This document shows positions 25,858 to 27,506 of a stretch of 49,835 bases of DNA, piece by piece. Location: contig NW_021834451.1 in assembly GCF_006345805.1 (NCBI RefSeq), forward strand, positions 1 through 49,835, read 5' to 3'. The notes beneath the pieces are model-generated. The model was not told the origin of the DNA and did no database searches. It saw only the letters and a program-made list of their open reading frames with translations. This stretch comes from Octopus sinensis. Lineage: Eukaryota. The translations under genes and the position numbers were made by a program. Numbering within the stretch: the first letter of the stretch is position 1; each line of letters starts with the position of its first letter.

Positions 25858-26005
25858 TAACAGAGTTAAAAGAGTTTATAGACAATGTTCAAAAGGAGTG
25901 TGTGGGGGCAACCATCTTTATCAACAGTATGTATGCTGTGCAGGTTTGTTCTGCTTGTGTATAGGATACAGCTGCAATTGTGTTTACCGCCCATGGGCCT
26001 TGTAA
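25858..26005 (+). CDS. Gene 2, terminal exon 3a (NRVKR|VYRQCSKGVCGGNHLYQQYVCCAGLFCLCIGYSCNCVYRPWAL*); spliced product 97 aa
   Basis: Acceptor TATTTACAG|, phase 2; RVKR site; framework C-x4-C-x10-CC-x4-CxC-x4-CxC. Confidence 0.85.
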
Positions 26006-26421
26006 ATTTACCTTCGTATTGCTCTTGTGAATTCTGTGGATAATATCATTATACGCCCAGTTGCAATCTCTTTTCTGATTTTTCTTGTAAATTTACCTTC
26101 GTATTGCTCTTGTGAATTCATGTGGATAATATCATTATACGCCCAGTTGCAATCTCTTTTCTGATTTTTCTTGTAAATTTACCTTCGTATTGACGTTCTG
26201 CTCTTGTGAATTCTGTGGATAAATTTCATTCTTCTGAGAAAATCGATGAGATATAAACCCAAGAGAAAAACCTAACACAAACAAAGCAAAGGAACCAGAC
26301 AAACAACAAAAATACACTCAACTGCAACAAGAACGTCAACAAATGTTGTTGTTGTTATTGATGTTGCAACATCTCCTCCTCCTGGTCCACATCGTCGCCG
26401 CTGTCCTCCCCCCTCTACTTT

Positions 26422-26466
<45 letters not shown>

Positions 26467-27292
26467 CTTTTCAACTTTGAAATCTAATCAATCGTCAGAT
26501 CCTACAACAGTAGAAAACTATGAATAACCATCAAGAGACACAGTGAAATATAAAATATTAACGAGCAGAAGTTTGATTTTGTACTTTATCCTGGAAAGAA
26601 ATTCACGTATGTTGCACCAAGAACTGAAATGGTAAAACAAGAGAAAATCTGCAAACCATAATCTACAACTATAAGTTTTCTAACAAACCGAAATTAATAC
26701 GACGAATGTATTTAATATCTAATATATTTATGCTATTAATCCGTCAAATTTTAATGAAATTCCAATGAAATAAATTTATTAAAGCATCGCAAGTACTTGG
26801 TGTTTCGTTATTCACTGTGCTATTTGTTTTTAAGCTATTGAAACGGTAAGAAAATCTCAGTGCTTCGTTCTTCGCTGTGATGTTGGCCTTTAAGTTATGG
26901 ATTTGGATGTTAAGATTTTACATTGCAGCGTCACACTATATTATTGTAAAAAATGTATTCCTTTAGGTCAAAATAGTGGCAATAATTTGAACACTGGCAT
27001 TCAATAAGCGTGACATTGGAATTCTTGATATATATTTATATACCAAGTCGTTAACAAATTCGCGAAAATACACTAAGTAATAGTAAAAAGAAAAGAAAGA
27101 ATTGACTTGTGGTACTTGTTTTGGATCTGCATGTTGTGAGTTCAAGTGCCGTCAGATTCTTTAGCTTTATCGACGTCAATAAAATAAACACCATTATCGT
27201 TTAATCTCTTTTTATCCCATGCATTCCTTGCCTTTTCCCTTAATGAGAAACCCTAATTTAATAATAGTTTGTATTCTCTACTATATTTACAG

Positions 27293-27506
27293 TAACAGAG
27301 TTAAAAGATATCGTAAATGTTCAAAAGGATCTTGTGAGGGCCACCCTCTTCTTCGACACTATCATTGCTGTGCAGGTTTCATATGTCTGTGTAGAAGATA
27401 TCACTGCTATTGTAGTTCACAAAATATGATTCATGTGGATAATATCATTATACGCCCAGTTGCAATCTCTTTTCTGATTTTTCTTGTAAATTTACCTTCG
27501 TATTGA
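27293..27506 (+). CDS. Gene 2, alternative terminal exon 3b (NRVKR|YRKCSKGSCEGHPLLRHYHCCAGFICLCRRYHCYC + 30-aa tail); spliced product 119 aa
   Basis: Tandem duplicate of exon 3a with an intact acceptor, RVKR and identical Cys spacing. No separate signal or pro exon was found between 26005 and 27293. Confidence 0.75.

Follow-up and report, generated by a model that had tools for sequence, protein, structure and literature searches.

Tandem terminal exons of a predicted eight-cysteine peptide gene in octopus: divergent peptide cores between flanks homogenised by exchange

The stretch of Octopus sinensis DNA analysed here (contig NW_021834451.1 of assembly GCF_006345805.1, positions 1 to 49,835; hereafter the window, 49,835 nucleotides (nt) in full) contains gene B, an unannotated gene whose predicted product has a signal peptide, a KR-terminated propeptide and a peptide of about 40 residues with eight cysteines. 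Two segments of this gene, 3a and 3b, are by their sequence tandem copies of the terminal exon of this secreted-peptide gene, with a period of about 1.3-1.4 kb. The peptide-coding cores of the two copies differ strongly, whereas the sequences that flank them are nearly identical. The explanation that we favour, with a confidence somewhat better than even, is that the core is an old island of peptide-coding divergence and that its flanks have been kept alike by unequal crossing-over and gene conversion. For the homogenisation of the flanks there is statistical support from two haplotypes.

The terminal-exon array in two haplotypes

Gene B comprises exons 1 and 2 at 23456-23642 together with the terminal exons 3a and 3b. 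The duplicated unit is the terminal exon only, with a single signal-like exon and a single propeptide exon upstream of it. Self-BLAST and alignments place the repeat units at 25605-26953 and 26951/27040-28269, with their junction at about 26951-26953. Each cassette carries a polypyrimidine tract and the acceptor TATTTACAG/T (the slash marks the splice point), followed by five propeptide residues ending in KR, an eight-cysteine peptide, a 3' untranslated region (UTR) and an AATAAA hexamer. The features of the gene are as follows.

23456 to 23512, forward strand: gene B exon 1, a signal-peptide-like open reading frame (ORF) of 19 codons from ATG; the only strong donor, TTG/GTAAAT, is at 23513
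23561 to 23642, forward strand: gene B exon 2, propeptide, 82 nt; its sole open frame takes 1 nt from the preceding exon and passes 2 nt on
25605 to 26953, forward strand: cassette 3a, unit 1 of the array, with intron tail, terminal exon and downstream block (self-BLAST and alignments)
25858 to 26005, forward strand: coding part of 3a behind the acceptor CTACTTTATTTACAG/T, with NRVKR at 25859-25873, the predicted mature 43-residue eight-cysteine peptide at 25874-26002 and a TAA stop
25886 to 25981, forward strand: core of 3a from the first to the eighth cysteine, framework C-x4-C-x10-CC-x4-C-x-C-x4-C-x-C
25999 to 26230, forward strand: 85-nt repeat in the 3'UTR of 3a, beginning at the stop codon; three units in the window, one in the second haplotype (at about 28860 of that locus)
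26769 to 26774, forward strand: putative poly(A) signal of 3a, the first AATAAA past the stop and about 770 nt away from it; its homologues lie at 28088 (3b) and 12099 (gene A, a paralogue described below)
26951 to 28629, forward strand: cassette 3b, unit 2 of the array (self-BLAST and alignments), present twice in the second haplotype
27293 to 27506, forward strand: coding part of 3b, with NRVKR at 27294-27308, the eight-cysteine peptide, a 30-residue hydrophobic tail and a TGA stop at 27504
27318 to 27413, forward strand: core of 3b from the first to the eighth cysteine, sharing the framework of 3a

The second haplotype is an overlapping locus of the Octopus vulgaris reference assembly (L001; OX597835.1, GCA_951406725.2), which is annotated with the protein P0001 ("Hypothetical predicted protein [Octopus vulgaris]"; gene model at L001 10001-30124). 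Non-coding sequence diverges by 0.24-0.57% between the window and this locus around gene B (0.57%) and around the first exons of gene A, so that the window represents another haplotype, a different individual or a very near relation of the reference. Divergence between the haplotypes is very uneven: window 9506-11804 and L001 14094-16398, in intron 2 of gene A, are 4.5% divergent with many indels. The reference array consists of three cassettes (3a, 3b, 3b) compared with two in the window, with an 87-89-nt spacer at each junction and the same register throughout. Both exon types show zero nucleotide differences from those of the window, the coding sequence of 3a included, and exon 1 of gene B is likewise identical. 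P0001 itself is a chimera of gene A exons 2 and 3, gene B exon 2, part of 3a, and 3b in another frame; it reads gene B exon 2 in the frame given above and with the same junction to 3a. This fusion of two genes with three terminal exons, of which one is misframed, leaves the peptide family effectively without annotation.

It is barely credible that the array is an artefact, be it a false duplication, mis-polishing of long-read data or a pair of alleles assembled one behind the other. The reference assembly is based on Oxford Nanopore reads polished with short reads (PMC10700109), and near-identical repeats are hard to polish; against this, the array is present in two non-identical assemblies that agree in its exon sequences and in the register of its junctions, the window is without N, and a 1.4-kb unit fits well within single long reads. 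The window is otherwise AT-rich and rich in microsatellites.

The divergent core and its age

Between the first and the eighth cysteine, 24 of 96 nt differ between 3a (25886-25981) and 3b (27318-27413), 14 of the 24 non-cysteine residues are replaced and all eight cysteines are kept in both cores. Three codons differ purely synonymously (Cys TGC/TGT, Leu TTG/CTG and Tyr TAC/TAT). The intron directly upstream differs at 7 of 253 aligned nt, the 16 coding nt of NRVKR at none, and the 3'UTR and downstream stretch beyond an unalignable tail at 14 of 835 nt. A preliminary description of this DNA had given the same figures for the core, about seven differences in about 250 nt of intron and an identical NRVKR, all of which alignment and codon comparison reproduced. 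The contrast between the core and the pooled flanks (24/96 against 21/1104 nt) is far above chance, given a Fisher p of 2.7e-16. At its 5' edge the divergence starts with the first codon past the KR site, where 4 of 9 nt differ and a 3-nt indel is present, and identity switches to 25-45% difference at this KR/mature boundary. The 3' edge is the unalignable stretch behind the eighth cysteine; 3b lacks a stop at the position where 3a and gene A have theirs, and its frame continues for 30 codons to 27504-27506. Within the core the differences are spread evenly over the three codon positions (9:8:7), and the ratio of transitions to transversions is 9:15, compared with 6:15 in the flanks. A footprint of A-to-I editing was considered as a source of the core divergence and rejected, as the changes are mostly transversions.

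The preliminary description had ascribed this pattern to positive selection on the mature domain, a claim that the codon counts do not bear out. Nei-Gojobori counting (NG86) over the 32 core codons of the single 3a/3b pair (S = 19 synonymous and N = 77 nonsynonymous sites; Sd = 4.8 and Nd = 19.2 differences) gave a synonymous divergence (dS) of 0.31, a nonsynonymous divergence (dN) of 0.30 and a ratio of the two (omega) of 0.97, with a bootstrap 95% interval of 0.33-3.9 and low power; dN/dS is not significantly above 1 anywhere. The core dS exceeds the flank divergence, which is 0.019, by a factor of about 13-16 (Fisher p = 4e-5). The same contrast is found with the three purely synonymous codons only (Fisher p = 0.007), and the bootstrap lower bound of the core dS, 0.077, exceeds the flank value. 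Selection on amino acids cannot raise dS; the raised value means instead that either the core predates its flanks or it mutates faster than they do.

The cysteines add to this picture of the core. At the core's own rate of change the retention of eight out of eight has a probability of 0.0003-0.002, and since it would otherwise be so improbable, both exons appear to have been under scaffold constraint while they diverged. Judged from the sequence, this retention argues against a long-dead 3b. Adaptation need not be invoked for the amino-acid divergence, whose rate across the 32 core codons equals the synonymous one.

A burst of adaptation would make the array a young tandem duplicate, about 2% diverged like its flanks, whose mature codons were driven apart by diversifying selection as has been claimed for venom peptides. 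The replacement of 14 of 24 non-cysteine residues on a conserved cysteine scaffold, an omega of 1.64 for the non-cysteine codons and a divergence that begins exactly past the KR cleavage site would all fit such a history. It is nevertheless improbable, for the core omega of 0.97 is nowhere significantly above 1, synonymous divergence exceeds that of the flanks about 13-16-fold and the three codon positions are hit equally. Moreover, there are zero replacement differences between haplotypes or between the two 3b copies of the reference, and the type-specific differences in the flanks are graded rather than of uniform age.

Exchange among the cassettes and with gene A

The five available cassettes (3a and 3b of the window; 3a, 3b and 3b of the reference) were aligned, and variable sites were divided into those fixed between the 3a and 3b types and all others.

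Pro and mature coding sequence, 121 nt: 28 sites fixed between types, 0 other variable sites
Upstream intron, 253 nt: 4 sites fixed between types, 8 other variable sites
Proximal 3'UTR, 230 nt: 5 sites fixed between types, 6 other variable sites
Distal block, 487 nt: 0 sites fixed between types, 13 other variable sites

The proportion of fixed to variable sites is 28:0 in the coding sequence against 9:27 in the flanks (p = 1.1e-10). At the flank rate of variable sites (2.8%), the probability of finding zero in the coding sequence is about 0.03, and the exons are, if anything, constrained between haplotypes. These counts bear directly on a focal hypermutation of the mature-peptide exon, by an error-prone polymerase for example, an idea that has been discussed for conotoxin exon 3 (PMC3862624). 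Such a process would raise dN and dS jointly, and the two are indeed equally raised in the core. At 13 times the flank rate, however, the 121 coding nt of the five cassette copies should hold about 40 variable sites; they hold none, so that ongoing hypermutation is excluded; the transition to transversion ratio of the core (9:15) also resembles that of the flanks (6:15) and betrays no special mutational signature. Hypermutation as the origin of the island is thus highly improbable.

Outside the exon, the type-specific sites decay with distance from it (proximal 3'UTR against distal block, p = 0.003), and this decay is the shape of a divergence island in a recombining array. The exchange extends to gene A, a paralogue of gene B that lies upstream in the window.

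5276 to 5411, forward strand: gene A exons 1 and 2 (exon 1 at 5276-5332, a 48-nt intron, exon 2 at 5381-5411)
11164 to 11299, forward strand: coding part of the gene A terminal exon, ERLKR followed by an eight-cysteine peptide with 32 residues from the first to the eighth cysteine
11812 to 12283, forward strand: distal downstream block of gene A, 99.6% identical to the 3a block at 26482-26953, compared with 56-89% for the genes themselves

Gene A and 3a differ at 27 of 250 nt in the intron next to the terminal exon (89% identity) and at only 2 of 472 nt in the distal block, 500 nt downstream (p = 2.7e-11); the outlier in this block is the 3b of the window, not gene A. Different segments of the repeat unit give conflicting relationships, that is, discordant trees. 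At two sites of the distal block, few as they are, gene A and 3a of the reference share a variant against gene A and 3a of the window, and the paralogues that share it lie 14.7 kb apart. Along their whole length genes A and B are 97-99% identical over 2.4 kb upstream, with a break at the start of exon 1, then 56-89% identical across the gene body, with a core dS of about 1, and then again 99.6% identical downstream. A Sawyer-type permutation of polymorphic sites gave P values of at most 0.0005 in every 3a-3b comparison and of at most 0.001 in three of the four comparisons between gene A and 3a, a result that by itself shows clustering of differences and not its cause. The in-register difference in cassette number between the haplotypes implies unequal crossing-over. 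Homogenisation of the flanks by exchange, which the preliminary description had named as the alternative to selection, is therefore upheld: site patterns are discordant, paralogues have variants in common and the number of cassettes differs between the haplotypes.

At 4907-4915, the point where the upstream identity of genes A and B (97-98%) stops, gene A has an isolated copy of the opening 9 nt of exon 1 in the B-like form, and the A-type exon 1 (5276-5284 onward) follows about 360 nt past it. By its sequence and position the copy resembles the trace of an exchange whose end fell within exon 1.

Ectopic exchange over at least 14.7 kb, as it occurs in this cluster, could also have created the island at a stroke, if the core of one of two young duplicates (about 125 nt) had been overwritten by a conversion tract from a distant family member. 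Such an event would account for the raised dS as well as for the abrupt edges of the island and the indels there, of 3 nt and more. Neither the 50-kb window nor the reference locus contains a donor; gene A, the divergent gene D and a relic exon (both described below) are far more different, and the near-to-distal fall of type-specific sites is better explained by long-term homogenisation around an old island. An imported patch is accordingly regarded as unlikely.

The favoured explanation is an old island between exchanging flanks. The terminal exon alone was duplicated into a short tandem array, as the sequence shows. The core would have kept its old divergence, with dS and dN both about 0.3 and all cysteines retained, and ongoing unequal crossing-over and gene conversion between cassettes would maintain 97-100% identity in the intron tail, pro-codons, 3'UTR and downstream block. 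Gene A, 14.7 kb away, would take part in this exchange as well. It is proposed that homogenisation halts at the mature-peptide boundary as selection for two different peptides removes converted, identical cassettes; a second possible reason for the halt is that 25% mismatch may block the extension of heteroduplex.

Several points weigh against this explanation. The sites are few (19 synonymous and nine type-specific flank sites) and come from two haplotypes only. Codons with two or three changes may be multi-nucleotide events that inflate the NG86 dS, and import of a short foreign patch would mimic the dS signal. The 5' edge of the island lies exactly at the KR/mature boundary, which is also expected from a selection-driven burst, and the interval around the omega of 1.64 for non-cysteine codons (0.59-6.9) takes in strong positive selection. 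Two further points concern the gene itself. Exon 1 of gene B, spliced at its only strong donor, ends in phase 0 and is out of frame with exon 2, and 3b carries a 30-residue read-on tail that is unconstrained, as a 14-nt indel between the window and the reference alters its distal part. The same phase-0 break between exons 1 and 2 is found in gene A (5332/5381) as in gene B (23512/23561), the two being about 9% diverged there, and the splice-site sequences of both exons are base-for-base identical in the window and the reference. An assembly error behind the frame breaks was considered and is probably not the cause, as both assemblies agree at these splice sites.

The peptide family, its relatives in design and its significance

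Like alternative terminal exons, 3a and 3b each have their own acceptor and poly(A) signal and an ORF whose phase is correct. Tentatively, the array may be a working cassette system in which a single promoter, signal exon and pro exon are common to two or three terminal exons used as alternatives; it is an equally tentative suggestion that the peptide made, knottin-like and different for each exon, would depend on which acceptor and poly(A) site are used. Alternative terminal exons are known from peptide genes of the calcitonin/CGRP type. Like these, the octopus gene has 5' exons for signal and pro-region followed by two or three terminal exons with their own acceptor, peptide and poly(A) signal; unlike these, its candidate alternative exons are recent paralogues of each other, and the tail of 3b is aberrant. 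The phospholipase A2 (PLA2) genes of crotaline snake venoms and toxin clusters in concerted evolution, such as the Nv1 genes of Nematostella, are known for coding exons that are more divergent than introns and UTRs, with the non-coding parts of clustered paralogues homogenised. In these clusters whole genes are the repeat unit, and Nv1 copies are homogenised including their coding part. Unlike Nv1, the octopus array has a coding core that is the one part escaping homogenisation.

The closest pattern is that of the conotoxin genes, and the octopus peptide is no conotoxin by any of the sequence-based tests run. Conotoxin genes consist of signal, pro and mature exons, with phase-1 and then phase-2 introns in most superfamilies; the introns are conserved and exon 3 shows Dn and Ds both several-fold above those of exon 1, together with frequent indels (PMC3862624). 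The octopus gene is predicted to have the same exon layout, also in a molluscan host, and the boundaries of its exon 2 imply phases 1 and 2. As for the order of phases, exon 1 of gene D ends in phase 1, whereas in genes A and B the strong donor leaves exon 1 in phase 0, in either assembly. No relationship to conotoxins is detectable in the sequence (Pfam, E <= 10) and the host is a cephalopod; unlike conotoxin genes, the octopus gene has an intron 1 of only 48 nt and has duplicated its terminal exon alone instead of the whole gene. A dN/dS above 1 in the mature exon, as expected of conotoxins, is not seen either (omega 0.97, with low power). The conotoxin-like pattern noted in the preliminary description thus stands as a resemblance, in that pro-region and intron are conserved, the mature exon is highly divergent and Dn and Ds are both raised, and falls as a case of positive selection. 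If the cassette system is real, the conotoxin-like intron phases might point to a mollusc-wide architecture for cysteine-rich secreted peptides.

Database searches returned little. Pfam scans of three paralogues gave zero families at E <= 10. A word-indexed search of 5.8 billion protein clusters with the gene B precursor had P0001 as its sole match, and the word-indexed search with the gene D precursor had none, both queries being conceptual exon joins with one bridging residue each. When 1.84 billion representative proteins were searched with a HMMER profile, the only matches were P0001 and P0002, a repeat protein unrelated to it. Sequence searches of the PDB gave a best E of 7.1 or nothing. 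This best match, which is not significant, is the spider eight-cysteine knottin U4-agatoxin-Ao1a (2n6n), with which the peptide shares the spacing CC-x4-C-x-C-x4-C-x-C in the C-terminal half. An AlphaFold2 model built from a four-sequence alignment has a mean predicted local distance difference test (pLDDT) score of 66 and a C-terminal beta-hairpin. Foldseek against the PDB found nothing at E <= 0.001, the top hits being psalmotoxin, a CBM1 module and atracotoxin at E >= 3.2. The peptides of 3a, 3b and gene D read C..C..CC..CxC..CxC and so possess at least six cysteines with an adjacent CC as the third and fourth, as knottins do. Cysteine pattern and model are compatible with a knottin that has a fourth disulfide, which is a likeness of scaffold and not of membership or common descent. 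The peptide motifs are printed in no searchable paper and no paper on cephalopod knottins was found. A 2026 preprint that surveyed the venom glands of cephalopods lists 27 superfamilies of short secreted proteins whose function is unknown; they are no more than a lead. A role of the peptide in venom, defence or signalling is possible.

At least four members of the family lie within the window. Genes A and B are 79% identical in the residues of their signal exons and about 30% in their mature peptides, both have the 48-nt intron between exons 1 and 2, and exon 2 of gene A has an in-frame deletion of 51 nt relative to gene B. The gene A core (11186-11281) has the same length as the 3a core (25886-25981) and also eight cysteines, one of which stands at position 15 and not 25, so that one disulfide partner has apparently moved in the predicted gene A peptide. 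The remaining members are as follows.

7636 to 7704, forward strand: relic of a mature exon in intron 2 of gene A, internally deleted; the reference copy is at L001 12659-12733
34122 to 34322, forward strand: candidate exons of gene D, with a signal-like exon 1 at 34122-34194 that ends in phase 1 and exon 2 at 34227-34322
41200 to 41446, forward strand: terminal-exon ORF of gene D, with the cysteine core at 41228-41344, a long read-on tail and a stop at 41444-41446

The relic contains a basic run, the first cysteine and the CC pair and then passes directly to a tail that resembles that of 3b, and it is because of this jump that it is taken to be internally deleted. Gene D, with the framework C-x6-C-x10-CC-x4-C-x-C-x10-C-x-C, is a very divergent member of the family. 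Its signal is only faintly similar to those of genes A and B, the junction of its candidate exon 2 and terminal exon is out of frame as assembled, and its terminal exon lies outside the reference locus.

Several repeats surround these genes. An interspersed repeat of about 380 nt with a tRNA-like head occurs at 3163-3559, 25245-25612, 30503-30884 (reverse strand) and 31241-31628, with part-copies at 16968-17148 and 33213-33401; ARAGORN called no tRNA in these copies, which resemble short interspersed nuclear elements. One copy adjoins the 5' end of cassette 3a, where it replaces 89 nt of intron that are kept in 3b and gene A. Tandem arrays at 34613-35690 and 41890-42893 have periods of about 184 nt, 111-113 nt and 201 nt, and scattered units related to them are found at 29472-29723, 41526-41755, 43546-43966 and 48473-48662.

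What is new here is the host, the orphan family and the terminal exon alone as a repeat unit, with a number of cassettes that differs between haplotypes. A hypervariable exon within conserved flanks is by itself not evidence of positive selection, and the locus offers a clean worked example, since synonymous sites and the second haplotype indicate that here the flanks are young and the exon is old. The locus also reveals an octopus family of small eight-cysteine secreted peptides, predicted from sequence, that has no detectable relative among 1.84 billion representative proteins. As the small peptides of octopus are poorly catalogued, this family is a candidate source of bioactive peptides, whether for venom, defence or signalling. 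Duplication of the terminal exon alone, with a haplotype-variable number of cassettes, would be an unusual route by which to diversify a secreted peptide.

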